Shown: in pieces, positions 2,942 through 43,524 of the stretch
How positions within the stretch are numbered: position 1 is the first letter of the stretch
Layout of the letters: the number at the start of each line of letters is the position of its first letter
IMG/VR virus record: IMGVR_UViG_3300023174_000038
Span: 1-64,000 of that record
DNA: 64,000 nucleotides
Direction: 5' to 3' (one strand)
Notes under the pieces: generated by a model
The model's input: the letters and a program-made list of their open reading frames with translations, nothing else
Databases searched by the model: none
What the model was told of the DNA's origin: nothing
Translations under genes and position numbers: made by a program

Positions 2942-2976
2942 TCACTAATTATACAACAAATAAAACAAAAAATCAA

Positions 2977-3002
2977 TAAAAAAGGAGAGACCAAAGTCTC
3001 TC
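2977..3002 (-). terminator. Intrinsic terminator after the ATPase gene
   Basis: GAGAGAC-TTTG-GTCTCTC followed by CTTTTTT on the minus strand. Confidence 0.75.
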
Positions 3003-3082
3003 AAAAGTAATTAACAAAGGAACTAACGAAAAATATTAACGAAACGGGCTTATTGACATTGCCGTTACGCACACTGCAGGGG

Positions 3083-4111: not shown

Positions 4112-4134
4112 AGCTTCTCCTGTGTGTTAATCAA

Positions 4135-4177
4135 TCAATACAAGTATTGTATCACGGATACCATTTATTGTCAAATT
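4135..4177 (-). promoter_or_regulatory. Sigma70-type early promoter, copy 1 of an exact 43-bp direct repeat
   Basis: TTGACA-ATAAATGGTATCCGTGA(17)-TACAAT; identical to 4576-4618. Confidence 0.85.
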
Positions 4178-4553: not shown

Positions 4554-4575
4554 TTCGTAGTCCTCTTTATCAGTT

Positions 4576-4618
4576 TCAATACAAGTATTGTATCACGGAT
4601 ACCATTTATTGTCAAATT
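4576..4618 (-). promoter_or_regulatory. Sigma70-type early promoter, copy 2 of the 43-bp repeat
   Basis: Exact copy of 4135-4177. Confidence 0.85.
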
Positions 4619-4824
4619 TTGGCTATCAAATTAGCGTGAATTTCATTCATTTCCGACTGTTCTACGTAGAAATCGGATCTAGGATCATAATATTGGCCCT
4701 CTTTGTTGTCATAATACAACACTCTACCGGAGAAATTGAACGGACCTTCTAGGCCATTACGTGGACCATACTTTGTACGCATTTCGTCCATCAGATACTT
4801 GTCAGCAACAACTTTGTAACTCAT
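4612..4824 (-). CDS. Hypothetical early protein
   Basis: 70-aa ORF (GLEGPF..GRVLYYDNKEGQYYDP); its TGA stop lies inside the TTGACA of the next promoter. Confidence 0.8.
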   Translation of the reverse strand: MSYKVVADKYLMDEMRTKYGPRNGLEGPFNFSGRVLYYDNKEGQYYDPRSDFYVEQSEMNEIHANLIAKI

Positions 4825-4850
4825 AAGGCCCTTTCAACTGAATAAGACTC

Positions 4851-4884
4851 TATTGTATAGCAAAATCCATTTATTGTCAAATTT
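4851..4884 (-). promoter_or_regulatory. Sigma70-type early promoter (TTGACAATAAAT family)
   Basis: TTGACA-ATAAATGGATTTTGCTA-TACAAT. Confidence 0.8.
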
Positions 4885-24419: not shown

Positions 24420-24525
24420 GCTTTGATAAGGTATCTAATGCTCCGGTGAGTAGTCTAATAAAAATATAAAAGATTACTCCTAGTACTAATACTATAAATC
24501 CATAGCCAAGTATATCTAATATCAT
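24409..24525 (-). CDS. 38-aa single-TM membrane peptide (MILDILGYGFIVLVLGVIFYIFIRLLTGALDTLSKHDD)
   Basis: Hand translation; ATGA overlap with the vWA gene stop; fills the gap between neighbours. Confidence 0.6.
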   Translation of the reverse strand: MILDILGYGFIVLVLGVIFYIFIRLLTGALDTLSKHDD

Positions 24526-25808: not shown

Positions 25809-25833
25809 ATTGGTCCTTTGTTATTTAAGTATC

Positions 25834-25866
25834 TATTGTAACAGAGATTGTATTAATTGTCAAAAT
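25834..25866 (-). promoter_or_regulatory. Sigma70-type early promoter
   Basis: TTGACA-ATTAATACAATCTCTGT-TACAAT. Confidence 0.75.
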
Positions 25867-26030
25867 TACATTGACAGTTTGCGATAGCCTTTATCAAAGT
25901 AAATCCTTGCGTAAGGATCCGCACCTTTAGTGTACAGTTCCTCCGCTTCACTTTTGTTCAATCCACGATCTCGGGCACTTTGACCCATTGCGTAGAAATA
26001 CTTCTTGCCAGTTAAAATCTTTGTTGCCAT
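25866..26030 (-). CDS. 54-aa hypothetical protein (MATKILTGKKYFYAMGQSARDRG...)
   Basis: Hand translation; starts just after the ATPase stop and ends at the next promoter. Confidence 0.6.
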   Translation of the reverse strand: MATKILTGKKYFYAMGQSARDRGLNKSEAEELYTKGADPYARIYFDKGYRKLSM

Positions 26031-26031
26031 A

Positions 26032-27132
26032 TTAATTACCTGCGTCTACAATGTACTTGCCGTATTTCTTGTGAAAGTCATCAAAGTTCTTCAACTGACT
26101 AGGTTCAATCGGTAACTTGTATGTCTTAAGCGCAATCTTAGCACCCATAACAACTAGTTCAGTCTCAAAGTTTGCCATAATGTAACTGAAGAAATTATCA
26201 GCCATTGTGTGAAACTCTTTACTAGAAACTTTCTTTGTTTCAAGTGCATCACGCAATTCATAGCACATTGAAATTGTCAATGAGTACATAGCAGAAATTT
26301 CTTTAACTGCAAGGTCCTTAACTTTACCTGACAAAATATCTGAGGGTTCGGGCATACGACCTGCTACTTTACGATGTGCCGCAAACTTAACAGCAAGACC
26401 TTCACCGACAGCACCTGAAATCAAATTGAACAATGTATCACTATCTGTATCATCTTCATCATTCAACAAGTCACTTACAAAACACCATGTACGAGGTGTA
26501 GCAAATGCTCTGCTTGATGATTTAGCATCAAAGTCATACAAATCTTGTTTAGCGAAACTCAAGTAACCCACAACGTCTTTGTGAATACCTTTGTTTACTG
26601 CCCAGTTCTGCCAAGAAGTAAAATCTGCTCTCATTTCTAAGTGTAAGAAACGATTAGCGAGGGGCATCGGCATACGATATGTAACACCTTTGTCACTATC
26701 ACGATTACCTGCCGCAACAATCACAACGTTATCGGGAAGTACATACTTACCAACTCTGCGATTCAAAATCAACTGATAGCCGGCCGCTTGTACTGCGGGA
26801 CTTGCTGAATTCATTTCATCTAAGAATAGAACAACGATAGGGTACTTGCTTGCTAGTTCATCATCAGGCAAGTCAACTGGTGCCGCCCAATCCATCTTAT
26901 TAATATCTTTATTAAAGAATGGGATACCACGAATGTCAGTAGGCTCCATTTGTGCCATACGCAAGTCAATCATGTAGCCACCGAGTTCTTCAGTAACTTC
27001 TGCTACAACTTCTGATTTACCGATGCCGGGAGGGCCCCACAAGAAAAGCGGGCGTTTTGCTTTAAATGCTTTAAGCATTGCTTTGCGAGTTTGTACACTA
27101 GTGATAGTGAGATTATCTGATACTGATGCCAT
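26032..27132 (-). CDS. MoxR-like AAA+ ATPase
   Basis: WGPPGIGKS, LFLDEMN, AAGNR, PLANRF, TPRTW; partner vWA gene downstream. Confidence 0.88.
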   Translation of the reverse strand: MASVSDNLTITSVQTRKAMLKAFKAKRPLFLWGPPGIGKSEVVAEVTEELGGYMIDLRMAQMEPTDIRGIPFFNKDINKMDWAAPVDLPDDELASKYPIVVLFLDEMNSASPAVQAAGYQLILNRRVGKYVLPDNVVIVAAGNRDSDKGVTYRMPMPLANRFLHLEMRADFTSWQNWAVNKGIHKDVVGYLSFAKQDLYDFDAKSSSRAFATPRTWCFVSDLLNDEDDTDSDTLFNLISGAVGEGLAVKFAAHRKVAGRMPEPSDILSGKVKDLAVKEISAMYSLTISMCYELRDALETKKVSSKEFHTMADNFFSYIMANFETELVVMGAKIALKTYKLPIEPSQLKNFDDFHKKYGKYIVDAGN

Positions 27133-27985: not shown

Positions 27986-28891
27986 TTAAAAGCTATGAGA
28001 TAAACCAATACCAACTTGTTTAACATCATTTGTTTTACCACCAGCATCAACATTGCGATAAGCAACTAATACATTGGTACGCTTACTGAAAGCATAATTA
28101 ACACCTACGTTATATGCTTTAACTTCTCCTGCGGCTAAACCAGTTTTAGTAGCATAGCTACCTTTAACACTAACTTCATTAGTTACCGGAGCTGTTACAC
28201 CATAAAAATGACCTTTAGTTTTAACTAGACCTGCTTTATCATCACTTTGAATTGTAGACAATTCAAAACCAGCTAGTTTTCCACTAGCAGTTACTACATT
28301 GGTATAATCTGTACCAGATTCAAAACGTGCAACTGCGGCTGCAACAGGACCTAATTTTCCACCAATACTCCATGATGTTGCTTCTAACGTAGCAGGTGCT
28401 GTGTACATACTACGGTCATACGTAGCAAATACAGGACCAAAATTTGCGGCTAAGTAAGCACCATCACCAATACGCTTGTCACGTACATTAACTACATCAA
28501 CCGAAACGGATGAATAAAGCGCACCGCCAAATGGATCAGCGTTCTTCATAGTAATGTATTCACTGTGTTCTTTACGACCTAAATCAATACTACCAAATTT
28601 ATTAGAAAGACCAATTGTACTTTGACGATCACCTAATTGTGTTGTAGCCCCAGCTTTTGGATCATCGGCTACTACAGAAGTTTCAACAACTACTCTAGCT
28701 GTTAATCCATGTCCTAATTTTTCTTCAGCTTTGATGCCAAAACGACTTGAATCATTAACAAGAGAGTTAATTTTTACAGTACCTGTTTTAGTGCTATCAG
28801 CAAATTCACTGATTTTACCATATACTGATACTTGTGCTGTTGCAACCATTGTTGTTGCAGCCAATAATGTCGCTAATGCGATTTTTTTCAT
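27986..28891 (-). CDS. Gram-negative general porin (beta-proteobacterial type)
   Basis: Signal peptide, AQVSVYG, SRFGIKAEEKLGHGL, RQSTIGL..FGSIDLGR, YAFSKRT, C-terminal GIGLSHSF. Confidence 0.9.
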   Translation of the reverse strand: MKKIALATLLAATTMVATAQVSVYGKISEFADSTKTGTVKINSLVNDSSRFGIKAEEKLGHGLTARVVVETSVVADDPKAGATTQLGDRQSTIGLSNKFGSIDLGRKEHSEYITMKNADPFGGALYSSVSVDVVNVRDKRIGDGAYLAANFGPVFATYDRSMYTAPATLEATSWSIGGKLGPVAAAVARFESGTDYTNVVTASGKLAGFELSTIQSDDKAGLVKTKGHFYGVTAPVTNEVSVKGSYATKTGLAAGEVKAYNVGVNYAFSKRTNVLVAYRNVDAGGKTNDVKQVGIGLSHSF

Positions 28892-28975
28892 AAAATTTCC
28901 TTTTAAAAATAAACCTGATTAATCAGGCTAGACTAATATTTATAGTAATTTTTTCTACCCATATAAAATAGTTGT

Positions 28976-29668
28976 TTACGTAATAACGTCTGCTTTAACA
29001 TGAAAAATAGCTCTTTTTACCAAACTATCTATACTATTAACTAAGGGAATGCCGTTTTTTTCTACTTCTCTAACGGCTAATGGTAATTCTGTACAACCTA
29101 ATACTACTGCACTTGCTCCACGACTAATCAAACTGTCTACTACAGGCATTAACATATTATGTGATACAACCATATCCCCTGCCTTAATTAAATCTATAGC
29201 AGGTTGTACTATGTTGTTCATTTCTTCTTGACTGGGGACAATACAATCCCAATCAATTAAACGATTTTGATATAAGCCTAATTCAATTGTAGCTTGTGTT
29301 CCCATTATACCTATTGTACCCGTAACATTTATATCACGTAATACATCAGCTACACTATCTACAATATGTAAAATAGGAACTTTAAATTTAACTAATTCAT
29401 CATACCAGTAATGCGCTGTATTACAAGGGATAACAATCGTAGTACATCCAACTGCTTTCAATACTTGCATACCTTGTAGTAAATATGGTAGTGGTCTATC
29501 ATCACCATTACGTATACTTGTGCTACGATCAGGTACACGTGGCTCATTCCATAATACAAATGGAATATGTTCTTGGTCACAAGTTGCGGGGGTTTGTTGT
29601 ATAAGTCGTGTTATATATTCCGCACTTGCTGCCGGACCCATACCGCCTAGTATACCTAGACGTTTCAT
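28976..29668 (-). CDS. Aspartate/glutamate racemase family protein
   Basis: LGILGGMGP, catalytic cysteine pair IPCNTAH and LGCTELP. Confidence 0.92.
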   Translation of the reverse strand: MKRLGILGGMGPAASAEYITRLIQQTPATCDQEHIPFVLWNEPRVPDRSTSIRNGDDRPLPYLLQGMQVLKAVGCTTIVIPCNTAHYWYDELVKFKVPILHIVDSVADVLRDINVTGTIGIMGTQATIELGLYQNRLIDWDCIVPSQEEMNNIVQPAIDLIKAGDMVVSHNMLMPVVDSLISRGASAVVLGCTELPLAVREVEKNGIPLVNSIDSLVKRAIFHVKADVIT

Positions 29669-30270
29669 TTTTTGTTAAACAATAAACTAGATGCAATAAC
29701 CATAGCAGTTTGTGCGGCTTCTACATCTGTGGGTTGTTCTTTCCAACCTACACTAATCTGCCCAATGAAGACTCCGGGCTCTGCTGGTACACTGATACGA
29801 CACATATAGTTTACTCCGTATTCTTTATATACAAATCCAATAAGACTTTGTGGCTTTGTATATGGGCTACAGGGAATCTTACCTGACATCAATCCAATAA
29901 CATCGTTATTATTGTCATAGTTTTTACTAAACAACCCAACTTCTAATCCGTCATTTCTTTTATCTCTACCACCATTGCGTGTAGCTAAGTAAACAACTTT
30001 TCGTGTGTTAAGCAATGTATTGACTTCAAGAAAGGCAACCATTTCTACTTCAGTATTTTTTAATAAGAAATTATATGCGTCATCATACTTACCGTTCATC
30101 TTTGGTAATGCCTGTTGAGCACGGTAACTTGCTAAGAAGGCATCTTTTTCTGTATAAACTATCCAACCACCAAATCCTAGTACACAGAGAAACACAACGG
30201 TGAATAGGCGAAATGGACTTTCGCCTATATAGGTTAATAAACTAAAGAGAAAATCTTTAAGTTTGTCCAC
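29665..30270 (-). CDS. Single-TM membrane protein with a C-terminal GAF-like domain; resembles the T4 holin T architecture
   Basis: N-terminal amphipathic segment, TM at about aa 20-39, two Cys, C-terminal strand-strand-helix pattern; CDS is solid, function is inference. Confidence 0.55.
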   Translation of the reverse strand: MDKLKDFLFSLLTYIGESPFRLFTVVFLCVLGFGGWIVYTEKDAFLASYRAQQALPKMNGKYDDAYNFLLKNTEVEMVAFLEVNTLLNTRKVVYLATRNGGRDKRNDGLEVGLFSKNYDNNNDVIGLMSGKIPCSPYTKPQSLIGFVYKEYGVNYMCRISVPAEPGVFIGQISVGWKEQPTDVEAAQTAMVIASSLLFNKK

Positions 30271-31534
30271 CAGTAGCTACCTCTTTGTCGCAGACAAATG
30301 CTGTTACTGCAACATTGCCGTGTACGTGACTTGCTGTACGAATCATATCCATTAATGGATCAACGGCAATTAACAATACTAACACAGCTTCACTTGGTAG
30401 TTTTAATAAGTCACACACAACTGCTACTGTAGCAACTGTAAGAATACCTGTTGTACCTGCACTTGCTAATCCTGCCAAAATACTACCAAATAACACAACT
30501 GCTAGTCCCGTTAAGCCTAATGGAGCATCATAGATATTAGCAATGAATACTGTAGCAATAGCATAGTAAACAATACTACCAATACGATTGACTGTAAAAC
30601 TTAGTGGAACTGTTAGTTCAACACCACCTTTATCAAAGTGTAGTCTGTGTAATGATTCTTGTGCGTATGGAATACAAGCTAAACTACTACGTGAACTAAT
30701 AGCAACAATCAATGTTTCTTTAGTTTCACGGATAACAGTCATTAGACTTAATCCACTACGATACCAGATCATAGCAGTACCTGCGGCTACAACTAATAGT
30801 CCACCAACAAACTGTTGGAATACAAAGTCAAACATTGTTAAGAATATACCTACCCCTACCTTACCAACTTGGGCAGCAATCATTGCTAATAGAGCGATTG
30901 GTAAAAAGTAATTTAAGAATTTAAAGATACTGATACTTGCTTGTTGAATGCTTTTAAGTACTTCAACTAGCATCTTTTGACCTTCTGTTTTAAGATGTCC
31001 AAGAGCAACACCAAATATTAAACAGAAGATAACAATCTTCAAACTTTCACCATTGTTTAACGTGTTGAAAATGTTTTCTGGAATAAACTTCTCTGCCATC
31101 TTACCTGCACTTACTGCCGGTGCTACTGGCATTGGTTCTTTAAGAGTAATGTTTAAATCAGTACCACTGTCTTTGTTATTAACCAATACACCAAGTTGTG
31201 TTTTCTTTTCAGGAGTCATTTCAGTTCCTGTGACTAAAACTGTACCTACGCCAATTATTGCGGCTAAGAACATGCTACCAACAAAGCCTACAATGATTTT
31301 GCGTATTAATTGTTGGCTGCCTTCTTTTTGTAGTAAGCCAATGATACCAACTAGTATAGTTGCTAACAAGAATGGTAGTACAACAACTTTAAGTAAACTT
31401 ATATAGATACTACCAATACTATCAAAGTTAATGCTGAACTCGGGTGCGTAAACACCACTCAATATACCCACGATAATAGAACCAAGTATGGTCCACGGGC
31501 TTGTTAAAAACGTTTTTAAATGTGCGGTTGTCAT
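30257..31534 (-). CDS. Dicarboxylate/amino acid:cation symporter (DAACS, GltP-like)
   Basis: Multi-TM; LLK.VVLP, FIPENIF, SSRSS motif, DMIRTA in TM8. Confidence 0.9.
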   Translation of the reverse strand: MTTAHLKTFLTSPWTILGSIIVGILSGVYAPEFSINFDSIGSIYISLLKVVVLPFLLATILVGIIGLLQKEGSQQLIRKIIVGFVGSMFLAAIIGVGTVLVTGTEMTPEKKTQLGVLVNNKDSGTDLNITLKEPMPVAPAVSAGKMAEKFIPENIFNTLNNGESLKIVIFCLIFGVALGHLKTEGQKMLVEVLKSIQQASISIFKFLNYFLPIALLAMIAAQVGKVGVGIFLTMFDFVFQQFVGGLLVVAAGTAMIWYRSGLSLMTVIRETKETLIVAISSRSSLACIPYAQESLHRLHFDKGGVELTVPLSFTVNRIGSIVYYAIATVFIANIYDAPLGLTGLAVVLFGSILAGLASAGTTGILTVATVAVVCDLLKLPSEAVLVLLIAVDPLMDMIRTASHVHGNVAVTAFVCDKEVATGGQT

Positions 31535-31543
31535 ACTGAGTCC

Positions 31544-32361
31544 TTATTTCTTTTCAGCTTTGTAGCGATCCATTAACTTTTTAGTGTCAATATTACTGTA
31601 TTCATTTTTAATAACGTAATTAATAATGCTTAACAGTTGTAGTGATTTAGGATTTACTGCTACAGCAATATTATCTACGCTATCACTTATTGTAATTGTC
31701 TTAGTACTAATTGCGGCGTCTGGTTTCTCAAAAGCAATTTTCTTAATTTCAAACTCATCACGGTACGCAGCCGCAATATCACCCCTTGTAACTTTATCAA
31801 TGATTACATCCCATTTATCTTCTGGTAGAAATACAGCATTAGGGAAATTGATACGGGCAAATGTGTCATAGCTTGAGTTACGAATAAAACTTATTTTACC
31901 GTTAAAATCTCTAATTACTTGATATGTTTCTTTGCCTTGACTATTTTGACTTAGCCATAAACGATTAACAACTAAACTTTGTCTTAGCTTAATATAAGGA
32001 TCACTGAACCTAACAACCTGTAATCTAGGGCCGGTTACTGACAATTTGCTAACAGCAATATCGGCACGTCCGTCTCGTACTTGTTCAACAACTTCAGCAA
32101 AACTTTCTGCATCTCGTCTAAATTGTACTGGAACTCCGAGTAATACTCCAATTCTTCGTGCAATTTCAACGTCAAGACCATGGATATCATCCTCACCGCC
32201 ACTGAAGAAGGGAGGGTTATCTTTTTTGGTCATAGCCACAATAAGAACGTTTGCTTTCTTAATTGCGGCTATATCAGGGGGTAGTGGTACCGTAGAAGTT
32301 GGTAATTGTGCGTGGACAACTGAACTAATCAGTACAAATAATAATAGTAGTAGTTTTTTCA
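31544..32361 (-). CDS. Periplasmic amino-acid binding protein (family 3 SBP)
   Basis: Signal peptide MKKLLLL, NPPFF, GLDVEIA, GRADIAVS.LSVT..R, RFSDPY; start near 32361 (track start 32380). Confidence 0.85.
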
Positions 32362-32404
32362 TAGTGTTGTATTTATGCAAGGTTATATGTCAATTGTTTT
32401 ACTA

Positions 32405-32512: not shown

Positions 32513-33160
32513 TTACTTTCCCAATAAGCTGTCAACCTTAGCCTCAGCAACATCTAAACGTGCTTCAATAGCGTCCAATATTGGATCTGCTGGAGTAGAA
32601 ACTGCTTCAACAATTTGTTGTGTTACTTCAGGAGAAACTTCTTCAACACCTGTAGCTGTAGCAATTACTTCAGCAACTGCGGCTGCTACTTCTTGTGCTA
32701 CTTCTGGGGCCGGAGTTGGCATATCAGCAACTGCTTGCATAATAGCTTCTGTAATTGCTACTGGATCAACTACAACTTCTGGCTCTGCTGTTACAACTGC
32801 CATAACTGCGGCTGCAACGATTTCAGCAACTTCCTCATGAGCAACGGCTGCTGCTTCAGTTTGTGCTATAACAACGTCAGCAACAATGTCAGCGGCTTCT
32901 GCATGGTCAGCACTTGGTGATAGTGCAACTACTTCTTCAACTTCTATCGGTGCATCTGCGGCTGGGGCAGAAATAATAGCATCAATATGTTCTTGAGTTT
33001 GAACAGCAATCAAGTGGTCAACTTGTACTTCAACTACGGATAATCTTGCGTCTAGTTCTTCAATGCTTATGGCACTGTCTGTGTTAACTGTTGTTCCAGT
33101 TAGGTTGGCTAATTTGGCTTCTACAGCTACTAATCTTGCGGCTAAATCTTCAAATCTCAT
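32513..33160 (-). CDS. Acidic Ala/Val/Glu-rich protein with three ARLxxxE coiled-coil motifs; likely -1 frameshift extension to 32460
   Basis: SD AAGGAG; ends G GGA AAG TAA followed by a hairpin. Confidence 0.75.
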   Translation of the reverse strand: MRFEDLAARLVAVEAKLANLTGTTVNTDSAISIEELDARLSVVEVQVDHLIAVQTQEHIDAIISAPAADAPIEVEEVVALSPSADHAEAADIVADVVIAQTEAAAVAHEEVAEIVAAAVMAVVTAEPEVVVDPVAITEAIMQAVADMPTPAPEVAQEVAAAVAEVIATATGVEEVSPEVTQQIVEAVSTPADPILDAIEARLDVAEAKVDSLLGK

Positions 33161-33206: not shown

Positions 33207-33241
33207 TATTTAACAAGTATTGTGTGACAATGATGTGACAA
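33207..33241 (-). promoter_or_regulatory. Pho-box-like direct repeat plus TAAATA
   Basis: TTGTCAC-ATCA-TTGTCAC, 11 nt, TAAATA. Confidence 0.7.
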
Positions 33242-33242: not shown

Positions 33243-33953
33243 TCACGACCAATATTTAGATCCGTCTAAATTGTCCCAATATTTTTTATTGTTCCGATTA
33301 ACAAAATTCTTAACCAAATATTTACCCATACCAAGATATCCCATCTTTTTAAATCTACGACTATCCTGTCCAAAGTGATGCTTAATGATTCTAAATTTTT
33401 TTGGACTGTACTTTTTAGACAAGAAATAATCCTCAGATGTTACAAACTGTTCAGGGAATCCTCCATATTCAATAAACTTATCTCTACGGGTTAGCATAAA
33501 TGCCCCAACAGCAAATGGACTAAAGAATTTCAATGTATGATTTATTGTATTAAAAAGCGTAAATCCAATCATAGCTCTTGGGTCTTTATCATAAGATTTG
33601 ATGTTTAACCCAACAAGATCCAATTGTTTAGATTCCATAATATCTACTGCATCTTTTATTACATTATTCTTAAAGAAACGAACATCAGCATCAATGAATA
33701 AAATGTACGGCGTTGTGGCTAATTTAGCACCGTTATTTTTAGCAATAGAAACAGGGCCGCCACCAATAATTTCAACATTCAATGAATAACTATTATCTTT
33801 AATGACCTTTCTAGTATTATCAGTGGAACAGTCAGCAATGATAACTCTAGTATCACCAATATCTTGACTACGCAACGAATCTAACAAATGATGAATATAA
33901 TTTTCTTCATTCTTGCAAGGTACAACAATAGTAATTTTATCACTGAGTTTCAT
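33243..33953 (-). CDS. Family 2 glycosyltransferase
   Basis: TIVVPCKNEE, IIADCSTDNT, KNNGA, LFIDAD, GGF, SED; start MKLSDK at 33953. Confidence 0.9.
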   Translation of the reverse strand: MKLSDKITIVVPCKNEENYIHHLLDSLRSQDIGDTRVIIADCSTDNTRKVIKDNSYSLNVEIIGGGPVSIAKNNGAKLATTPYILFIDADVRFFKNNVIKDAVDIMESKQLDLVGLNIKSYDKDPRAMIGFTLFNTINHTLKFFSPFAVGAFMLTRRDKFIEYGGFPEQFVTSEDYFLSKKYSPKKFRIIKHHFGQDSRRFKKMGYLGMGKYLVKNFVNRNNKKYWDNLDGSKYWS

Positions 33954-34120
33954 TTTTTTATACACTTTCCTTCAATTTTAAATTGATTAAACTTTAACCA
34001 ATATGTCATACTTTGTAAACTTTGTTCACATGAGGATCGGTCCTGAAATGTCAGTTCTACCCGTCCCGGTATGTCCTTTGGGTCGTTCATATGAACTGCT
34101 AATATTAGTAATACCCACAT
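33950..34120 (-). CDS. 56-aa protein with hydrophobic N-terminus (MWVLLILAVHMNDPKDIPGRVELTFQDRSSCEQ...GKCIKK)
   Basis: Hand translation; SD GGAGAAGGA; ATGA overlap with the GT2 start; overlaps the tail of the upstream phosphoesterase gene. Confidence 0.55.
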   Translation of the reverse strand: MWVLLILAVHMNDPKDIPGRVELTFQDRSSCEQSLQSMTYWLKFNQFKIEGKCIKK

Positions 34121-34868
34121 TGTCCTTCTCCTTAGTCCAAGTAACTATTTCCCAACGTCCATCATGATGTTCTACTAATGCTGTACAACTTTCAACCCAG
34201 TCGCCATCATTCATATAGATAACACCATCTATAGTTTTTATTTCAGCATGGTGTATATGACCACATATCACACCATCAAAGCCACGCTTTTTACAATAGC
34301 CAGCAAGATTCTTTTCAAACTGAAACATAAAATCTATAGCTTTTTTTACTTTGTGTTTAAGGTATTTGCTAATACTAAAGTACCCAAAACCAAAACGATG
34401 ACGTATCCAATTGAACTTACTATTGAGCGATAAAATGAAATCATATGCTTTGTCTCCTAAAAATGCTAACCAAGGTGCTAGTCGTGTTATGCCATCAAAC
34501 AAATCACCATGTGTAACTAAATAATGCTTACCATCTATACCTATATGTTCTATTTGATTATGAATTTCTATAAGACCAAAACTAAAATCATATGGAATCA
34601 TAGGTCTTAAAAACTCATCGTGATTGCCAGCAATATAAACAACTCTAGTACCACGTTTAGCATGGCCTAACACTCTACGTACTACATTGGTATGGCTTTG
34701 TTTCCAGCGCCATTTGTTTTGCTGTATACGCCATGCATCAATAATATCACCTACTAGATAAAGTGTATCACATGTATTGTGCTTTAAAAAGTTATTTAAC
34801 CTATCAGCCTGACTATCTTTGGTACCTAAATGTACATCACTCACAAAAATAGAACGATATGTTTTCAT
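34026..34868 (-). CDS. Metallophosphoesterase of the PlcP/LpxH-like family
   Basis: SDVHLG, LVGDIID.W, GNHDE, HGDLFD, CGHIHH, YMNDGDWVESCTAL; start MKTYRS at 34868. Confidence 0.85.
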   Translation of the reverse strand: MKTYRSIFVSDVHLGTKDSQADRLNNFLKHNTCDTLYLVGDIIDAWRIQQNKWRWKQSHTNVVRRVLGHAKRGTRVVYIAGNHDEFLRPMIPYDFSFGLIEIHNQIEHIGIDGKHYLVTHGDLFDGITRLAPWLAFLGDKAYDFILSLNSKFNWIRHRFGFGYFSISKYLKHKVKKAIDFMFQFEKNLAGYCKKRGFDGVICGHIHHAEIKTIDGVIYMNDGDWVESCTALVEHHDGRWEIVTWTKEKDNVGITNISSSYERPKGHTGTGRTDISGPILM

Positions 34869-34872: not shown

Positions 34873-34907
34873 TATTTATTGAGAGATATGTGACAAATTA
34901 GTGACAA
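34873..34907 (-). promoter_or_regulatory. Pho-box-like direct repeat plus TAAATA
   Basis: TTGTCAC-TAAT-TTGTCAC, 11 nt, TAAATA, 4 nt, ATG. Confidence 0.72.
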
Positions 34908-35541: not shown

Positions 35542-37209
35542 TTATTTATATTGTAGATTCACCAAATCTTGGTGTAGTTTATCGCTAGACAATTGACGCA
35601 AAACTCTTGCGTTGTCTACATTTACTTGATTTTTGTAAATCTCTTTTGGTGCATAGAACGGTGCATCTGCTAATGCAAATGAATATGCTTGATAGCCTGC
35701 AGGTTGTGTTGCCATTCTTGCTATATCAACACCGCCGGCTAATTCATTTGGCTGAACATTTCTATTCACTGTTTCTGTCTTTTGTTCTTGTGTATTTGTA
35801 TTTTGTACAATTGGTCTTTCTTCAATTGCATCATTCAATACTGAACGTGAACCCATTTTAATACCTTCATTCTGAGGTACTTCTATTTCAGGAGTAGTAG
35901 CATTACGACCCTGCGGTGATTGTAAACTATACATTTCAGTTGATCCAAATGAAACATTATTACTCATTGTATTATTAGGATCAGAAAATATAGTTTGAGT
36001 TGGTGAACGTAGTCCTCCAAGATTGATTACACTAGTCTGTGTAGTATTTACAATAGCAACAATAGATGATTGTGAGGATGTATTTATTTGTGTAGTTGAT
36101 GATCCAGTAGTTGTCATACTGCTAGTAACACTTTGTGCAGTTAGTGAACCAGCAACTGATTCTGCTTGTTCTCGTGCTTGCTGTGCATCTTTTGCGGCGG
36201 CTGACTCTGCTGCCTGAACAACTGCCTTAGCTTCATTGCCTATTCTAGTTTGGTTACTACTAATCATACTTAATACATTACCTAGACTAGGACCGGCTTT
36301 ACTATCATCTTTAGCAGATTTATTTTCACTAGGACGAGGCTGAGATCCTGCAGGAGGAGGATTTCCTGGCGGGGGAAGGGGCCCTGCTTGTTGAGAACCA
36401 TTAGGTGGGGGAGGACTACCTGGGGGAGGAGGTGGAGGTGCGCCATCTTCTGGTGGAGGTGGGGGAGGTGCATCCGCTACTGCTACTGGAGTAGGTGCTA
36501 ATTTAGCAAGAGCATCTGAGTAACCTCTACAACTAGGTGAGTATAATGGGTTAGTAGCACAAGGGTCAACACTATACTTCAAACTAAAATTTACATTAAT
36601 AATTTCAGGACCATATGGTCCAACCCAGTAGTTGTTGTCTCTTCCCACAAATCCATACTGAGCATTACCTAAATCAGGAGTAGCATATGCTGACTTAAAT
36701 GTTTCTGACCAATAGAACTGAGTCCAACCATATCTACGATTTACATCATAGTTGTATGCTTCTACTACCTTTGTGTTTGTGTTGTTGTATATGTTTACAT
36801 AAGCCTTTAGATAATCTTGTCTGCCATCATCCCATCCATTACCGTTCTTAGCAGTAAAGCCAAAGTTAAAACCATTCACTTGTAATCCTGTGCCACTATT
36901 AGGTAGCGCATTTTTAATAGCAACAGTTTGATTTAAGTCTGTTAGTCCATATGAAAAATTAATGACATTAGACCCTGCGCCCCAGGCGGCAACTCTGGGC
37001 AATGGACCACAATAACCAGGGCCGCCCGGCTCCCAACATGTAAGCTGTTGACCAATAGTACCGGCATTTTGCCATGTACTTGTAGTAGCTGTGGCATTAC
37101 TGGTAAAATTGACCAAATTACCAGTTGTTGTTACATCCTGACTATTAGAATATCTTATTGACAATAAGACCAAGAACAGCCCCAATGCCAATTTTCTTAT
37201 AAGTGTCAT
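35542..37209 (-). CDS. Secreted/surface protein with a beta-rich N-domain, Pro-rich linker and low-complexity stalk
   Basis: Signal peptide; DPCATNPLYSPSC; PPPPPP runs. Confidence 0.75.
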   Translation of the reverse strand: MTLIRKLALGLFLVLLSIRYSNSQDVTTTGNLVNFTSNATATTSTWQNAGTIGQQLTCWEPGGPGYCGPLPRVAAWGAGSNVINFSYGLTDLNQTVAIKNALPNSGTGLQVNGFNFGFTAKNGNGWDDGRQDYLKAYVNIYNNTNTKVVEAYNYDVNRRYGWTQFYWSETFKSAYATPDLGNAQYGFVGRDNNYWVGPYGPEIINVNFSLKYSVDPCATNPLYSPSCRGYSDALAKLAPTPVAVADAPPPPPPEDGAPPPPPPGSPPPPNGSQQAGPLPPPGNPPPAGSQPRPSENKSAKDDSKAGPSLGNVLSMISSNQTRIGNEAKAVVQAAESAAAKDAQQAREQAESVAGSLTAQSVTSSMTTTGSSTTQINTSSQSSIVAIVNTTQTSVINLGGLRSPTQTIFSDPNNTMSNNVSFGSTEMYSLQSPQGRNATTPEIEVPQNEGIKMGSRSVLNDAIEERPIVQNTNTQEQKTETVNRNVQPNELAGGVDIARMATQPAGYQAYSFALADAPFYAPKEIYKNQVNVDNARVLRQLSSDKLHQDLVNLQYK

Positions 37210-38287
37210 CTATCTTTTCCTCATCCATTTTTGGAATCTTGTCTGGATTAGCTTCCCACTGTGCTTTAGCTTGCTCACCAATCTTACCTTCATATGGACA
37301 AGGTGTGCCGGCTGCTAACATAGCATCAAATACACGACGGTCTTGACACATAGTAGCAACAGCGGCTACTTTCATACCCATATCATATAGTGTCTTAGAT
37401 AACTTTAATCGTTCACAATTCATATCACGTATTGTTCCACCTGAACTTACACCAAACACTTGTGTTTGTACACTACCTGAACTTCCTGTTGAACAAAGGT
37501 CAGCATTACCACCTGATAACATAGAAGGAGCTACAGCAGTAGGTGGAGGTTGAATCACACGTTGGGTAATTTCAGTCTGATTAATATTCTTGTTAGTTAA
37601 TTCACCTTGTTGAATATTTGTATTAACTGAATTGTTTTGATTTATATTATTATTAGTGGAAGTACTAGTACTAGTTGATGTGTTAATATTACGGTTAGTC
37701 ATATCACCCGTATTAACATTGTTATTAGTAGCTGTACTTGTACTAACATTGTTATTGTTATTAGTAGCCGTACTTGCACTAACATTGTTGTTATTGTATG
37801 TCATCGTACCAGTATTTTCGTTCTTATTAATATTGGTATTATTACTTGTACTCGTACTAACATTGTTATTGTTATAAGTCATAGTACCAGTATTGACATT
37901 GTTATTATTATATGTCATTGTACCAGTATTTTCATTTTTATTAATATTTGTAACAGTTCCACTCTGAATATTATTGTTTGTGTTTACACTAGTGCTAGAA
38001 CTATTGTTATTATTAGTATTTGTACTAGTACTATTAACAGCACTGGTACTATTGCTATTGCTGTTACTGACTGTATTACTGTTTGAAGTAACCGTACTAG
38101 TGCTATTACTTGTACTGTTTGTATCAACTAAACTTTTGGAATCATACCCGCCTTGATTGATTAATGTACTTGTACCTGTGGTTGTACCACCGCTGGAACT
38201 TGATGTGGTAGTAGTTTGTGCTTGTGTAGTGAATGCCATACCCAGCAAGGCAACTATAGCGAGAATCTTTTTCATTTTTATTATCAT
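37145..38287 (-). CDS. Secreted Asn/Thr/Ser-repeat protein with a Cys-containing C-terminal domain
   Basis: Signal peptide (MKKILAIV...AQA); NTGTMTYNNNNV repeats; PPPTAVAP...C..CERLKLSK..MCQD..PCP. Confidence 0.75.
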   Translation of the reverse strand: MIIKMKKILAIVALLGMAFTTQAQTTTTSSSSGGTTTGTSTLINQGGYDSKSLVDTNSTSNSTSTVTSNSNTVSNSNSNSTSAVNSTSTNTNNNNSSSTSVNTNNNIQSGTVTNINKNENTGTMTYNNNNVNTGTMTYNNNNVSTSTSNNTNINKNENTGTMTYNNNNVSASTATNNNNNVSTSTATNNNVNTGDMTNRNINTSTSTSTSTNNNINQNNSVNTNIQQGELTNKNINQTEITQRVIQPPPTAVAPSMLSGGNADLCSTGSSGSVQTQVFGVSSGGTIRDMNCERLKLSKTLYDMGMKVAAVATMCQDRRVFDAMLAAGTPCPYEGKIGEQAKAQWEANPDKIPKMDEEKIDDTYKKIGIGAVLGLIVNKIF

Positions 38288-39381: not shown

Positions 39382-42300
39382 TCAATTGTATTTAGTATTA
39401 AAATACTCTTTTAACCAAGGCCAATCATAACTTAGTCGTAATTTATCTAACTCACCATTGACTGATTCATAGTATTCTACAGCATGTTGAGCACCTTGTA
39501 TACTATATTGGGCATAGTCTCCTTCACCAACTGTTGTCCATACTTTCAATCTGTGTCTACTAATAGCACTATCATCTAATCGTAACTTAATAGCTTCACG
39601 GAAACTAGTGCGCCATGTACTAAACTCATCTGTATTATATTTTGCTACACCTGAATTAATCTCAACAACTTCATGCTCACTATCCAATGTAAAGTCTAGA
39701 CCTTTACCCATATTACCTAATGTAATCTGTTTATTGTATGCAATCATGGCTTGGTGACCATATACTAATCCATTAACAGGGTTACTTGCATAGAAGATAT
39801 AATGTTTAGGTACTTGTAATCTATCAGGTTGCCATGAGAAATCAAACTTACTATTGACTTTTAACTTAGCAAATACAGTAAACATCCAAGATGTTTGACT
39901 AGCAATTGCGGTTGCATGATAGGCAGCAACACGACCATTGACCCCATCAACTCTAACAACACGATTTTTCAGCCCTTTAGTCACGTTCAGTAAGTGTTCG
40001 TAGTTCTCGTCAGCTATGGCTTCACCGTTACTTAGGAAGACTATATCCAGCGGCTTTGACTGTCCCATCTTTGTTGATTTAGCAATATATGGATAATCAT
40101 ACAATTCTTTCTCAACATGATCGTTAGCTTCTTTGGGTACAACAATACGTGTGCCTCCCATATTCGTAATCAATATATTCTTAGATTCAATAGACCACAT
40201 ACTGATTGGTTCATCATTAATGTCTGGTGCGATTAAATTATCACTTGTAGTAAACACAGCATAAGGGAAGTTATAACTATGTTTTTTGAAATTCAAATGT
40301 GTATCAGCATCAGTAACAAAACTAGGGGCAGGCAAACGTTTTACTTTTTGATGCTGATTAAAGTTAATCTTCTCTATATTTTCTAGCTTATCCAAATCTT
40401 CTACAAGAATACGTAATTTGTTTACATTAATAAAGAATGTATCTCCAAACTTCTGTTTATCACTAGGGAATACATGTAACTGCTCCAATGAGAATGGATC
40501 ACATATATAAGTAAAGTCAAAGTTAGTGTAATCACATATTGAACTGCATACCCAAATGTAATGGTCCTTTTTAATGCCCAACTCATATAGCATATTCTTC
40601 AATGTAGTTAAGTAATCAGTTTCATACTTAATTGTATAAACGTTTTCACGTTTAGTCTTGCTTTCAATTAATGAAACAATATCATTAACTCCGTCATTAC
40701 CATAATCAATTAAGTAAACATCATACAAACAGTTACTAGCAACGGCACGTTTTGTTTTTACAAAGTTTAAGTTACTTAGGTGTTCAATAATTTTCACATA
40801 CTTTGTATCTTCCGCAAAGGTTTCTTTATTGACCATAAACGTACTACCCCAATGACTCCATTGTGTTCCAAACACATGAACCATTGTCATTTGCCACGGG
40901 TTAGGATAATAGTTAAAATCAAAGTTAGTGTAATCTAATTCGCTATTCAGTATCCAGCATAGTTCTGTAGTAGATTTATTGATACAGCGATTGATTGTGT
41001 CTACCCAACTGTGTAGATAACGTGTCTTTTGTAATGTAGGGAATTGTAACTTAAGCTGTTCAAATCTATTAGCTGATTCTTTATTACCTTTATCCACAAA
41101 GAAAGTATCAACTTGTTTGAATAACTTAGATAGATATTCTTCATCTAATTTTGTATTCTCAATAAAACTAATATCTCTATAACCTTTTTGCCACATCTTA
41201 CCGTTAACTAAGTAGGTTTGTGTTAACTCACTGTCAGGACTACCAAACGTATTAATATTAAATGCTTGTTCTTTAGTAGGTTTCCAACTAAAATCAAATT
41301 TAGTATAATTAATATTTTTACGTAATGCCCAAAATATTTCATTGCTATGTTGTTCTATTAATGCATCAAGTGTAGTTTCAATGTAATATTGAGGGTATTG
41401 AATAATACTATCTTCTGATAATAGTATATTTTCTAATAATACTATTTCTCCATCATTACCCGGTGTTATAAATTTAGGACCATCTTGCAAGTGAATATCT
41501 TCTAATATTGTACCAAATTGATAGATATAAGGAGGACTATATGGATCTGGGTGCCAACTAAAATCAAATATAGTTTTATCAAAACCTGCAGGTATGATCC
41601 AATTAGTAAAATTTTGTTTAAGTTTTGCTATAGGATAATCCATATATTTGACCTCAGTTGCGCCATTTGCAATATATCTTGGGCCACCTATCTTATCCCA
41701 TGTGTTAGGGAACTGATAGATATATGCAGGCTCAGTACTATCTGGATGCCAACTATAATCAAATTCTTCTATATTATCAGGTATATCCCAATTAGTTTTA
41801 TTAGGCAAATACTTTGATTTAATGATATCCATGTACTTTATGTTTGTATTTTCTGTACAGCCGGGAGCAGTAAACATAGGTCCATTTGTTTTTTGCCATT
41901 GTGTTCCAAATTGATAGAATAAAGGCTCATCATCTATATTTGGATGCCAGCTAAAATCAAACTCACTAGTATCTAGCCCTGCAGGTATAGACCAATGTGT
42001 CATATCTTGTTTAACTTTTGCTATAGGATAGTCTAAGTATTTTGTTTCTGTAGCACCCTCTACTGTAAATTTAGGTCCACCTGTTTGACTCCACGTACTA
42101 GGGAACTGATAGATATATGCAGGTTCTGTATCATCGGGGTGCCAACTCCAATCAAATGACGTTTGGTCTACATTACGTGGGATCAACCAATTTGTAAATC
42201 TCCATGCTACTACTTCTGCTTTAACAGCATCAATATATTTTAATTCTGTTGCACCAGGAACTATATAGCGAGGTCCCCCTGTCTTTTGATGTATAGTACC

Positions 42301-43524
42301 AAATTGATATATGTAAGGTGGGTCATGTGGATTAGGTTCCCAACTAAAATCAAAACTATTCTTTATAACATAAGGGGGTATTTCCCAATTGTCCGTGCAT
42401 GGTTTACGTGTAGCACGTTCTTCCATGTATTTGTATTCAGTTGCTCCTTCAACAACATATTGTATAGATATTTTATCTTCTGGCTTATTCCATTGATTGC
42501 CCCATGCATAGATATAGGGAGGACTCCACGGGTCAGGAACCCATGAATAATTTATCCCATCACTATTTTCTAAATGTTCAAATCGTGTACTGTTAGGTAA
42601 CAGTTTAGCTTTCATTGATTCATCATCAATAAACTTATATTCTGTTGCTCCTGGTACATGATATTCAACAGTTGGCATAATCTCTGCTGGATATTGCGTA
42701 TTACCAAATACATAAATAAATGCAGGTTCACGCGGATCAGGTCTCCAACTAAAATCAAAATTAAACTTATCTATAGAGTTCCATATTACCCACCTATCCC
42801 ATTCAGGTAATACAGCAACTGAGTTATCCATATACTTTCGGTCAGTAGCTCCTACACAATGATACTCTACTGTGGGTTTTAACTCAGCGGATATATATTT
42901 ATTACCCCAAGTATAGATATATGCGGGTTCACGTGGGTCAGGTCTCCAACTAAAATCAAAACTTGATTTATCTACCGCTTGTATTTCTATCCAGTTATCC
43001 CATTCAGGTATTAATTCTACTACCTCAGGCATGTATTTTACATTAGTTGCATCCTTGACATGATATTCTACATAATGTTTAATTTCAGTTGGATAGAATT
43101 TGCAACCCCATTTATATATGTAGGGCGGGTCATGTGGGTTTGGCTCCCAACTAAAATCAAACTTTAATTCATCAATTTTATCTAGCACCACCCAATTAGC
43201 ATTTTTTAAATTCTTTCTGAGTATAGGCTCAACATCAGCACGATATATAATTATGTCGCTATATCGGTGTGAGCATAGCCAAGTGCCACTATCTTTATTT
43301 TGTTTATTAGGCCATACATTGTTATGTTCACTTGTCCAAACTTCGTCATCGGGTAAAAAGTCAAAGTCCCAATCCCAATCAAAATTTGTATAATCACAAT
43401 ATTCATTGATTATCCAAAAATGGTCGGTGGTACATTGTTGTCTAGCATCGGCTAAATCAATTGCATGTTTTTCTCTGGGGTGGGCGTTGGGTTTACTACC
43501 GTAATAAAATACATCTCTAAGCAT
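39382..43524 (-). CDS. 1380-aa repeat protein with degenerate glycosyltransferase-like modules
   Basis: Nine roughly 67-aa FDFSWxPxPxxPxYIYxFG repeats; C-terminal domain (DIVFLSNGE..RVDGVNG..AYH..NPVNGLVYG..WRTSFRE..K) resembles 50931-51884. Confidence 0.75.
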   Translation of the reverse strand: MLRDVFYYGSKPNAHPREKHAIDLADARQQCTTDHFWIINEYCDYTNFDWDWDFDFLPDDEVWTSEHNNVWPNKQNKDSGTWLCSHRYSDIIIYRADVEPILRKNLKNANWVVLDKIDELKFDFSWEPNPHDPPYIYKWGCKFYPTEIKHYVEYHVKDATNVKYMPEVVELIPEWDNWIEIQAVDKSSFDFSWRPDPREPAYIYTWGNKYISAELKPTVEYHCVGATDRKYMDNSVAVLPEWDRWVIWNSIDKFNFDFSWRPDPREPAFIYVFGNTQYPAEIMPTVEYHVPGATEYKFIDDESMKAKLLPNSTRFEHLENSDGINYSWVPDPWSPPYIYAWGNQWNKPEDKISIQYVVEGATEYKYMEERATRKPCTDNWEIPPYVIKNSFDFSWEPNPHDPPYIYQFGTIHQKTGGPRYIVPGATELKYIDAVKAEVVAWRFTNWLIPRNVDQTSFDWSWHPDDTEPAYIYQFPSTWSQTGGPKFTVEGATETKYLDYPIAKVKQDMTHWSIPAGLDTSEFDFSWHPNIDDEPLFYQFGTQWQKTNGPMFTAPGCTENTNIKYMDIIKSKYLPNKTNWDIPDNIEEFDYSWHPDSTEPAYIYQFPNTWDKIGGPRYIANGATEVKYMDYPIAKLKQNFTNWIIPAGFDKTIFDFSWHPDPYSPPYIYQFGTILEDIHLQDGPKFITPGNDGEIVLLENILLSEDSIIQYPQYYIETTLDALIEQHSNEIFWALRKNINYTKFDFSWKPTKEQAFNINTFGSPDSELTQTYLVNGKMWQKGYRDISFIENTKLDEEYLSKLFKQVDTFFVDKGNKESANRFEQLKLQFPTLQKTRYLHSWVDTINRCINKSTTELCWILNSELDYTNFDFNYYPNPWQMTMVHVFGTQWSHWGSTFMVNKETFAEDTKYVKIIEHLSNLNFVKTKRAVASNCLYDVYLIDYGNDGVNDIVSLIESKTKRENVYTIKYETDYLTTLKNMLYELGIKKDHYIWVCSSICDYTNFDFTYICDPFSLEQLHVFPSDKQKFGDTFFINVNKLRILVEDLDKLENIEKINFNQHQKVKRLPAPSFVTDADTHLNFKKHSYNFPYAVFTTSDNLIAPDINDEPISMWSIESKNILITNMGGTRIVVPKEANDHVEKELYDYPYIAKSTKMGQSKPLDIVFLSNGEAIADENYEHLLNVTKGLKNRVVRVDGVNGRVAAYHATAIASQTSWMFTVFAKLKVNSKFDFSWQPDRLQVPKHYIFYASNPVNGLVYGHQAMIAYNKQITLGNMGKGLDFTLDSEHEVVEINSGVAKYNTDEFSTWRTSFREAIKLRLDDSAISRHRLKVWTTVGEGDYAQYSIQGAQHAVEYYESVNGELDKLRLSYDWPWLKEYFNTKYN

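Follow-up and report, generated by a model that had tools for sequence, protein, structure and literature searches.

Does a large freshwater phage carry genes that replace the phosphorus-containing membrane lipids of its host with sugar lipids? This question was raised by a stretch of DNA of 64,000 nucleotides (positions 1 to 64,000 of IMG/VR virus record IMGVR_UViG_3300023174_000038, in the following the window). The window belongs to a 348,701-bp virus record and encodes a large terminase. A near-identical DNA search of phage records gave no match. The original prediction had proposed that a PlcP-like phospholipase, an unannotated 56-aa ORF and a GT2 glycosyltransferase form a lipid-remodelling unit here. 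We first tested whether these genes exist as proposed. All three ORFs were confirmed on the minus strand, and the surrounding sequence was analyzed for further elements. The locus is organized as follows, in the direction of transcription:

34890..34907 (-), Pho-box-type operator P1, two 7-nt direct repeats TTGTCAC separated by 4 nt, ending 22 nt upstream of the phosphoesterase ATG
34873..34878 (-), -10-like hexamer TAAATA, 11 nt after the box and 4 nt before the ATG
34026..34868 (-), PlcP/LpxH2-type metallophosphoesterase (280 aa), with a conserved core of about 250 aa (to about 34119) and an unconstrained read-through tail (residues 251-280) over the small gene
34124..34133 (-), Shine-Dalgarno-like AAGGAGAAGG of the small gene, encoded inside the phosphoesterase codons T-K-E-K-D
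33950..34120 (-), conserved 56-aa protein with a predicted beta-beta-alpha-beta fold
33243..33953 (-), 236-aa family-2 glycosyltransferase, the presumed diacylglycerol glycosyltransferase
33224..33241 (-), Pho-box-type operator P2 (TTGTCAC-ATCA-TTGTCAC), starting 2 nt after the GT2 stop codon
33207..33212 (-), -10-like TAAATA of P2, 11 nt after the box, followed by a 46-nt leader with a hairpin and AAGGAGA
32513..33160 (-), acidic 215-aa protein behind P2
32411..32510 (-), two terminator-like hairpins that close the unit

Next, the class of the phosphoesterase was addressed. The protein matches Pfam Metallophos at E 3.6e-11, and all the metal-binding motifs are present (D11xH13, G40D41, G81N82H83D84, H120, G203H204xH206), with D11, H13, D41, N82, H83, H120, H204 and H206 conserved. 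Source annotations call the enzyme 'UDP-2,3-diacylglucosamine pyrophosphatase LpxH', LpxH structures are its only sequence matches in the PDB (E 2e-5), and viral 'lpxH' has been listed under lipopolysaccharide biosynthesis (PMC9611531). We therefore compared the enzyme with LpxH in detail. It scores 44-46 bits on the LpxH models. The two equivalog models gave 45.5 and 33.6 bits, against cut-offs of 134 bits (NF003743) and 190 bits (TIGR01854). In 39 gammaproteobacterial genomes, true LpxH scored 207-341 bits, while second paralogues scored 26-49 bits, and one of these paralogues is 43% identical to the phage enzyme. In a maximum likelihood tree, 30 LpxH sequences, that of E. coli included, fall on one side of a branch with 100% SH-aLRT support and a length of 2.9. 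The window enzyme falls on the other side, among cellular proteins. It is 18% identical to E. coli LpxH, differs from LpxH in the lid and lacks its C-terminal pattern, but keeps the YMNDGDWVESC block of the PlcP-like set. No lpx gene is nearby. Among 301 sampled Alphaproteobacteria, 109 hold a 44-57% identical copy, and Alphaproteobacteria appear to use LpxI rather than LpxH (Metzger and Raetz 2010). Thus the enzyme is not LpxH, and a role of the unit in lipid A or lipopolysaccharide biosynthesis is very unlikely.

The genomic neighbourhood of cellular relatives corroborated this assignment. In the genome collection, 30 cellular loci with the enzyme were found, and an Agt-like GT4 lies directly downstream of it in 17 of them. 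Two complete loci have OlsB/OlsA-like acyltransferases instead. Both arrangements have been described for plcP (PMC4796936). The window enzyme is 49-57% identical to cellular copies (unnamed or MAG orthologues) that precede agt-like genes, and characterised PlcPs are 46-47% identical to each other (PMC8528852). The gene order, with the phosphoesterase first and a glycosyltransferase directly after, is that of the PlcP-Agt lipid renovation operon of Proteobacteria (S. meliloti PlcP; Phaeobacter MED193; SAR11 HTCC7211; P. aeruginosa PA3219-PA3218). The enzyme class is therefore well supported, as originally predicted, whereas phospholipase C activity is inferred from characterised relatives.

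The 56-aa ORF had been placed simply between the two enzyme genes. This is not quite the case. It overlaps the last 95 nt of the phosphoesterase frame, and its TGA overlaps the GT2 start codon (ATGA at 33953-33950). It is translationally coupled on both sides. We wanted to know whether it is a real gene. It is intact and free of indels in 68 related loci, with 49 different sequences. Its pN/pS is 0.35, against 2.27 for the phosphoesterase frame over the same bases, and the phosphoesterase stop wanders from 11 to 46 codons downstream of the small ORF's ATG. At least 509 protein clusters of it exist in public data. D16, C31, L42, K43, F44, F47, K48 and C53 are invariant. Thus the small ORF is a real gene. 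In relatives that lack it, the GT2 ATG sits at the place of the Shine-Dalgarno-like sequence. Pfam, NCBIfam and PHROG scans gave no hit. The confident structure model (pLDDT 92) has no significant match in the PDB, the best being PurS-like at E 0.2. A protein-atlas search placed the protein among unnamed phage clusters, with DUF1482 as the nearest named family at 0.80, a score that chance often reaches. The overlapping 72-aa ORF of pelagiphage Mosig is a hydrophobic protein unrelated to the 56-aa protein. A complex of the small protein with the phosphoesterase was also predicted. The score was 0.45 against a best control of 0.00, the three runs agreed in at least 80% of contacts, and the partner's pLDDT was at least 74. 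However, this amounts to weak support only. In the calibration, 58 of 80 solved complexes and 2 of 110 mismatched pairs reached the mark, and scores of 0.60 or less are more often wrong than right. A role of the small protein as a subunit or regulator of the phosphoesterase thus rests on weak evidence.

The third gene was analyzed in the same way. By homologues, the true GT2 start is the ATG at 33953, not the GTG at 33965 given by the ORF list. The protein matches PF00535 at E 1.2e-21 (77.8 bits against a cut-off of 23.3). Its model (pLDDT 95.7) has a predicted GT-A fold with basic C-terminal helices, D88 and D90 of the DxD motif are invariant, and E174/D175 are conserved. It is therefore a GT2 enzyme and does not have the GT-B fold and GT4 domains of Agt. 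It reached 64.8 bits on TIGR04283, below the equivalog cut-off of 182 bits. In marine bacteria, plcP arrangements of types 3 and 5 show that partners other than Agt can follow plcP, including the processive Pgt of Mesorhizobium loti (PMC4796936). The phage GT2, which is short and has no membrane segments, also passes the Pfam GT21 threshold (25.3 bits against 21.7), and Pgt may belong to this family.

To test whether the enzyme and the transferase form a unit, related viral loci were compared. More than 598 IMG/VR contigs encode a relative of the enzyme. In the best 80, a transferase follows the enzyme in every locus that extends far enough, GT2 in 65 and Agt-like GT4 in 14. The small gene is present in 59 of the 80, and it always lies between the phosphoesterase and whichever transferase follows. 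The flanking genes differ between loci, and in one locus the pair persists at 43% and 45% identity. The transferase type changes at least 11 times on the enzyme's tree, and at least 4 times if only well-supported branches are counted. Thus GT2 and Agt-like GT4 have been swapped repeatedly in the same slot. In contrast, the GT2 itself has no characterised close relative. Fold and profile searches against the PDB and Swiss-Prot models gave only generic GT-A matches, to wall-teichoic-acid, O-antigen and polyprenol-linked transferases, and say nothing about the acceptor. PHROG matches to GtrB-like O-antigen conversion proteins were weak (E 6e-7 over the N-terminal 110 residues). The nearest proteobacterial relatives (33-35% identical) lie beside DedA/LssY-type membrane proteins, not beside plcP, and one 42%-identical relative has no phosphoesterase upstream. 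It is thus possible that the GT2 glycosylates another acceptor, such as a polyprenyl phosphate, an envelope polymer or a protein. The unit would then mainly alter the cell surface, for example to block superinfection as the original prediction had also considered, and the phosphoesterase would only supply phosphate. We regard this as unlikely, since the GT2 occupies the same translationally coupled slot as an Agt-like GT4 whose cellular orthologues follow plcP, no GtrA- or GtrC-like partner and no membrane-spanning segment accompany it, and the pair is kept together while the flanks vary. The use of diacylglycerol by the GT2 is nevertheless inferred from context only.

The upstream sequences provided evidence on the phosphate link that was not available to the original prediction. 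The 18-nt direct repeat TTGTCAC-N4-TTGTCAC, followed by N11 and TAAATA, occurs exactly twice in the 348,701-bp genome, at the two borders of this cassette. As a control, shuffled sequences were searched for the composite box-N8-14-TAAATA, and 0.0 copies were found. The architecture (7+4+7 nt, core TGTCA, 11 nt to a -10-like hexamer) matches the published Pho box, with the consensus CTGTCATNNNNCTGTCAT (PMC4415409, PMC8528852), and the P. aeruginosa plcP-agt1 operon has a Pho box (PMC8528852). TAAATA lies 4-7 nt before the ATG in most relatives. At the window phosphoesterase no Shine-Dalgarno sequence is present, which suggests a leaderless or nearly leaderless mRNA. The same architecture lies upstream of the phosphoesterase gene in 41 related loci and upstream of pstS in 14, and the 18-mer of P2 precedes pstS in identical form in two relatives. 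In 94 relatives, 66 of 74 such elements lie at cassette borders or before pstS, and all 11 loci with pstS upstream of the enzyme have one before pstS. However, 25 of the 94 loci lack both the small gene and the upstream box, and neither is therefore indispensable. Relatives show PstS-enzyme-small-GT and enzyme-small-GT2-PstS-Porin_O_P arrangements, the latter with a phosphate-selective porin, and in pelagiphage Mosig the homologue is next to pstS.

We considered that the boxes might not be PhoB sites, but operators for a phage-encoded regulator, a phage-specific promoter class or recombination sites that move the cassette, with expression unrelated to phosphate. The motif was found upstream of only 1 of 28 cellular plcP-like genes examined, so that calling it a Pho box rests on its architecture and on its link to pstS in the phages. 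Furthermore, the modules pstS, enzyme-GT and the acidic protein occur in different orders between relatives, each with a box at its border, a pattern that would also fit recombination at the boxes. On the other hand, only two copies exist in 349 kb, so this is not a general phage promoter, and no OmpR/PhoB-type DNA-binding domain is encoded by the phage. We therefore consider this alternative doubtful, although binding of PhoB is itself inferred.

Based on these observations, we favour, with moderate confidence and without activity, lipid or expression data for any phage copy, a membrane-lipid renovation module that is switched on when the infected cell is short of phosphate. Phosphorylated PhoB of the host, which is unidentified, would bind the boxes, which would take the place of a -35 element in front of the phosphoesterase gene and of the next gene. 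The PlcP-type enzyme would cleave the head group off membrane phospholipids, yielding diacylglycerol and a phosphorylated head group, whose phosphorus can feed synthesis of the 349-kb genome. The GT2 would then put a sugar from a nucleotide sugar onto the diacylglycerol, giving a phosphorus-free glycolipid that keeps the membrane intact until lysis. GT2 enzymes invert the configuration of the sugar and GT4 enzymes retain it (CAZy classification). The GT2 version should therefore make a beta-linked glycolipid, where the Agt version makes an alpha-linked one. More tentatively, large freshwater phages may carry a self-contained 'Pho island' that hijacks the host's PhoB, strips phosphate from the membrane of the starved cell and rebuilds it with glycolipid through interchangeable GT2 and GT4 versions, with the 56-aa protein as a previously unknown partner of PlcP and the acidic protein as part of the same response.

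In contrast to the cellular PlcP-Agt operons, the module is encoded by a phage, its partner in this genome is a GT2, a conserved 56-aa gene is inserted and overprints the enzyme's tail, the start looks leaderless, and a second box lies before an acidic protein. Literature searches for phage-encoded PlcP or viral lipid renovation in bacteria found no description of such a phage module. Phosphate-acquisition genes of marine phages (pstS, phoH, phoA) probably respond to the host PhoBR system (Zeng and Chisholm 2012), but they import or release external phosphate, or deal with unspecified sources, whereas this cassette would tap the cell's own membrane, one of the large phosphorus stores of a bacterium. 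Lipid remodelling also changes phage adsorption and grazing resistance in bacteria (PMC9457565, PMC9938194), so the module could also affect superinfection.

The phosphoesterase gene is not rare. Besides the IMG/VR contigs, thousands of metagenomic proteins carry it, mostly from lakes, where phosphorus often limits growth, and its database label as LpxH hides the proposed role. Only one run labelled as a metatranscriptome, from a lake, contained relatives of the cassette, as short contigs (90-95% alike) over parts of all three genes. This run is flagged as probably DNA, and the contigs have no direction. Finally, the gene behind P2 was examined. It encodes an acidic protein rich in Ala, Val and Glu (pI 4.05) without a family match, is inferred to be driven by P2, and is a recurrent neighbour of the cassette.

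The analysed DNA is the first 64 kb of a 348,701-bp virus record that CheckV rates as complete. Every ORF of 125 aa or more is on the minus strand, and one of them is a T4-type large terminase at 14005-15552. The three ORFs of the original prediction, a PlcP-like phosphoesterase, a small protein and a GT2, are present. The elements of the cassette and its borders are as follows.

34890-34907, Pho-box-type repeat pair upstream of the phosphoesterase ATG
34026-34868, minus strand, phosphoesterase (ATG at 34868), matching Pfam Metallophos
33950-34120, minus strand, 56-aa ORF, preceded by AAGGAGAAGG
33243-33953, minus strand, GT2, matching PF00535 at E 1.2e-21
33224-33241, second Pho-box-type repeat pair, two nucleotides after the GT2 stop
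33207-33241, promoter of the next gene
32513-33160, minus strand, very acidic 215-aa protein driven by that promoter

The GT2 is best started at ATG 33953, which is the start used by its homologues. The 56-aa ORF overlaps the last 95 nt of the phosphoesterase frame, and its stop codon overlaps the GT2 start (ATGA).

We next asked whether the small ORF is a gene. In every related locus that has the insert, the +2 frame holds an intact ORF of 56-58 aa. Across 68 loci there are 49 different sequences and no indels, and D16, C31, L42, K43, F44, F47, K48 and C53 are invariant. Over the overlapped stretch pN/pS is 0.35 in the small frame and 2.27 in the phosphoesterase frame, and the phosphoesterase stop falls anywhere from 11 to 46 codons after the ATG of the small ORF. 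Thus the small ORF is a gene, whereas the conserved enzyme ends near residue 250 ('TWTKEKD') and residues 251-280 are read-through. In 21 of 80 viral loci the insert is absent, and the GT2 ATG then sits exactly where the ATG of the small ORF sits otherwise. The small protein has been recorded by gene callers in at least 509 clusters, all named 'hypothetical'. In two further clusters that were looked up, it again lies between the phosphoesterase and a GT2 or a GT4. AlphaFold gives a confident predicted beta-beta-alpha-beta fold (pLDDT 92.4), and the hydrophobic N-terminus is therefore a strand and not a signal peptide. No match was found in Pfam, NCBIfam, PHROG or among solved folds, and a protein atlas search revealed only unnamed phage clusters, with DUF1482 at a chance-level 0.80. 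A predicted complex with the phosphoesterase scored 0.45 (median of 0.50, 0.45 and 0.40), against 0.00 for the best of three controls. This is only weak support, since the mark was reached by 58 of 80 solved complexes and 2 of 110 mismatches, but passes at 0.60 or less are more often wrong than right. The runs agreed in at least 80% of contacts, and the pLDDT of the partner was at least 74.

As the original prediction had proposed, the enzyme is of the PlcP/LpxH2 type and not LpxH. The NCBIfam LpxH equivalogs give 45.5 and 33.6 bits, against cut-offs of 134 and 190. In 41 sampled gammaproteobacterial genomes, true LpxH scores 207-341 bits. In contrast, second paralogues in the same genomes score 26-49 bits, and the one in a Photobacterium genome is 43% identical to the phage enzyme. 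A maximum-likelihood tree of 73 sequences places 30 LpxH sequences, including E. coli K-12 LpxH, on one side of a branch with 100% SH-aLRT support and a length of 2.9 changes per site. The window enzyme lies on the other side, in a phage clade (99%) nested among cellular proteins. The alignment shows all metal-binding motifs, and in addition a C-terminal YMNDGDWVESC block that is shared by the PlcP-like set and that E. coli LpxH lacks. Identity to E. coli LpxH is 18%.

The genomic context of relatives of the enzyme was then analyzed in a genome collection, where the scan returned 35 loci. Six of these (L015-L019 and L049) are 73-87% identical to the phage enzyme and are filed in MAGs of unrelated taxa: Haliscomenobacter, Polynucleobacter, Fischerella, a gammaproteobacterium and Chitinophagia. 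The five that are long enough to show it (L015-L019) carry the phage cassette, so they are probably phage contigs binned by mistake. The cellular relatives proper are 41-61% identical and come from Sphingomonadales, Parvibaculales, other Alphaproteobacteria, Gammaproteobacteria, a Holophagaceae MAG and Leptospira. In 17 of the 30 cellular loci (L020-L048 and L049) an Agt-like GT4 follows the enzyme directly. In two complete gammaproteobacterial MAG loci, L032 and L038, OlsB-like and OlsA-like acyltransferases follow instead. These are the arrangements described for plcP by Sebastian et al., who also note types in which other glycosyltransferases follow (PMC4796936). Of 301 sampled Alphaproteobacteria, 109 carry a 44-57% identical copy. 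For comparison, characterised PlcPs are 46-47% identical to each other (PMC8528852).

More than 598 IMG/VR contigs encode a relative of the enzyme, and thousands of metagenomic proteins are 83-90% identical. Among the best 80 viral loci, a transferase follows the enzyme in every locus whose DNA extends far enough. It is a GT2 in 65 and an Agt-like GT4 in 14, and the small gene is present in 59. Flanking genes differ from locus to locus, so the genes travel as a unit. In L005, a 378-kb contig that is presumably phage, curli-type genes (CsgF, CsgG, a curlin-repeat protein) and a FecR-like gene lie just upstream of the cassette (1-5236). On a tree of the enzyme gene (95 rows), the transferase type needs at least 11 changes, and at least 4 on well-supported branches alone. 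The two transferases have therefore replaced each other repeatedly in one translationally coupled slot. A third kind of transferase (Glyco_trans_1_3, GT-B) follows a 42%-identical enzyme in L004, an unverified phage contig from a faecal sample (3793-5705).

The GT4 version is 36-47% identical to the GT4 that follows cellular plcP-like genes, and its best NCBIfam matches are glycolipid synthases, all below their cut-offs. The GT2 belongs to a family of proteins of about 235 aa that are 34-47% identical. In the related locus L136 both genes have diverged to 43% and 45% identity and are still adjacent. However, a 42%-identical relative of the GT2 on a short contig has no phosphoesterase upstream, and the nearest proteobacterial GT2s (33-35% identical; 5 of 401 genomes) sit beside DedA/VTT-LssY_C membrane proteins. 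The predicted GT2 model is excellent (pLDDT 95.7), but it matches only generic GT-A enzymes. Diacylglycerol as its acceptor therefore rests on context alone.

A Pho-box-type promoter marks the cassette. Directly upstream of the ATG of the enzyme lies TTGTCAC-TAAT-TTGTCAC (34890-34907), followed by 11 nt, TAAATA, 4 nt and the ATG. After the GT2 stop lies TTGTCAC-ATCA-TTGTCAC (33224-33241), followed by 11 nt, TAAATA and a 46-nt leader with a hairpin and AAGGAGA in front of the next gene. A Pho box is defined as two 7-nt direct repeats separated by 4 nt, with CTGTCAT as the conserved unit (PMC4415409), and the P. aeruginosa plcP-agt1 operon has one (PMC8528852). In the whole 348,701-bp genome the repeat pair occurs twice, even with one mismatch allowed. 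The composite with TAAATA also occurs twice, against 0.0 in shuffles, and both copies are located here. TAAATA lies 4-7 nt before the ATG of the enzyme in most relatives and there is no Shine-Dalgarno sequence, which suggests a leaderless message.

Next, a relaxed form of the element (TGTMA-N6-TGTMA-N9-16-WAAATR) was searched for across 94 related loci (735 kb). It occurs 74 times: 41 just upstream of the enzyme gene, 14 upstream of pstS, 11 just after the transferase and 8 elsewhere. All 11 loci with pstS upstream of the enzyme have the element before pstS and not between the two genes. In contrast, 25 loci, all without the small gene, have no box upstream of the enzyme gene, and the motif lies upstream of only 1 of 28 cellular plcP-like genes examined. 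The modules pstS, enzyme-small-GT and the acidic protein occur in different orders in different relatives (L009, L050, L070 and L082, compared with the window), each bordered by a box. The repeated promoter elements may double as recombination points. In L017, one of the probably mis-binned contigs, a box very close to the E. coli consensus (TGTCATAAAACTGTCA; 1201-1237) precedes a 220-aa ORF about 2.8 kb upstream of the enzyme gene. A BPL_N-domain protein of similar size lies just upstream of the cassette in the relatives L173-L175.

Further relatives, L173-L175 (3487-5174) and L176-L178 (654-1649), show the orders enzyme-small-GT2-PstS-Porin_O_P, with a phosphate-selective porin, and PstS-enzyme-small-GT4. 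PstS and the porin lie directly after the cassette, or PstS directly before it, which makes a multi-gene phosphate island in phage genomes. Pelagiphage Mosig has its 47%-identical homologue back to back with pstS. The divergent intergenic region between these two Mosig genes (L002 3890-3990) holds TTAACA-type repeats at 11-nt spacing. The phage analyzed here has a phoH gene, but no pstS and no OmpR/PhoB-type DNA-binding domain, so a host regulator would have to act. The one lake run labelled as a metatranscriptome that contains relatives may be DNA, and in the absence of binding or expression data PhoB-dependent induction remains an inference.

Based on these observations, we propose a mechanism in which PhoB-dependent induction of the cassette would lead to cleavage of phospholipid to diacylglycerol and a phosphorylated head group, by analogy with characterised PlcPs. 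Glycosylation of diacylglycerol by the GT2 and a role for the small protein together with the enzyme are likewise inferred. In the CAZy classification GT2 enzymes invert and GT4 enzymes retain the configuration of the sugar, and the two cassette versions should therefore yield different anomers. The host is probably a Gram-negative bacterium with a PhoB-type regulator. The window also encodes a Porin_4-type porin, and the DNA comes from lake and freshwater metagenomes.

In the proposed mechanism the module works like the PlcP-Agt lipid renovation operon, and its enzyme passes the family tests on metal-binding motifs and clade. It differs from this operon in that it is phage-borne, uses a GT2 in this genome, carries an overprinting 56-aa gene and is paired with a second box-driven gene. 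Full-text searches found no description of a phage PlcP or of phage-driven phospholipid-to-glycolipid renovation in bacteria; viral copies are listed as lpxH, under lipopolysaccharide biosynthesis. The second box-driven gene encodes the acidic 215-aa protein (pI 4.05, 51% Ala+Val+Glu), which has coiled-coil-like ends and a very acidic middle rich in Ala, Val and Glu. Its GC content is 44% in a 35% GC genome, and it matches no family. Homologues lie beside the cassette, upstream or downstream, in at least 14 relatives, each with its own box.

The surrounding DNA encodes a run of host-like uptake genes (27986-32380, minus strand). The binding protein, symporter and racemase of this run also lie upstream of the cassette in the related locus L013. 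The run consists of the following genes.

27986-28891, minus strand, Gram-negative porin (Porin_4)
28976-29668, minus strand, Asp/Glu racemase
29665-30270, minus strand, 201-aa protein, unknown
30257-31534, minus strand, sodium:dicarboxylate-family symporter
31544-32380, minus strand, family-3 solute-binding protein

Other genes of the window were also recorded.

24522-27132, minus strand, a DUF2201 metallopeptidase/VWA-like protein next to an AAA ATPase
35542-38287, minus strand, two secreted-looking low-complexity proteins that overlap by 65 nt: a 380-aa one rich in Asn, Ser and Thr, which matches PHROG 20531 of unknown function, and a 555-aa one with a proline-rich centre
39382-43524 and 57050-63916, minus strand, giant ORFs of 1380 and 2288 aa with no Pfam match
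43543-49973, minus strand, three adjacent radical-SAM-type proteins, one with a B12-binding domain (46396-48720)
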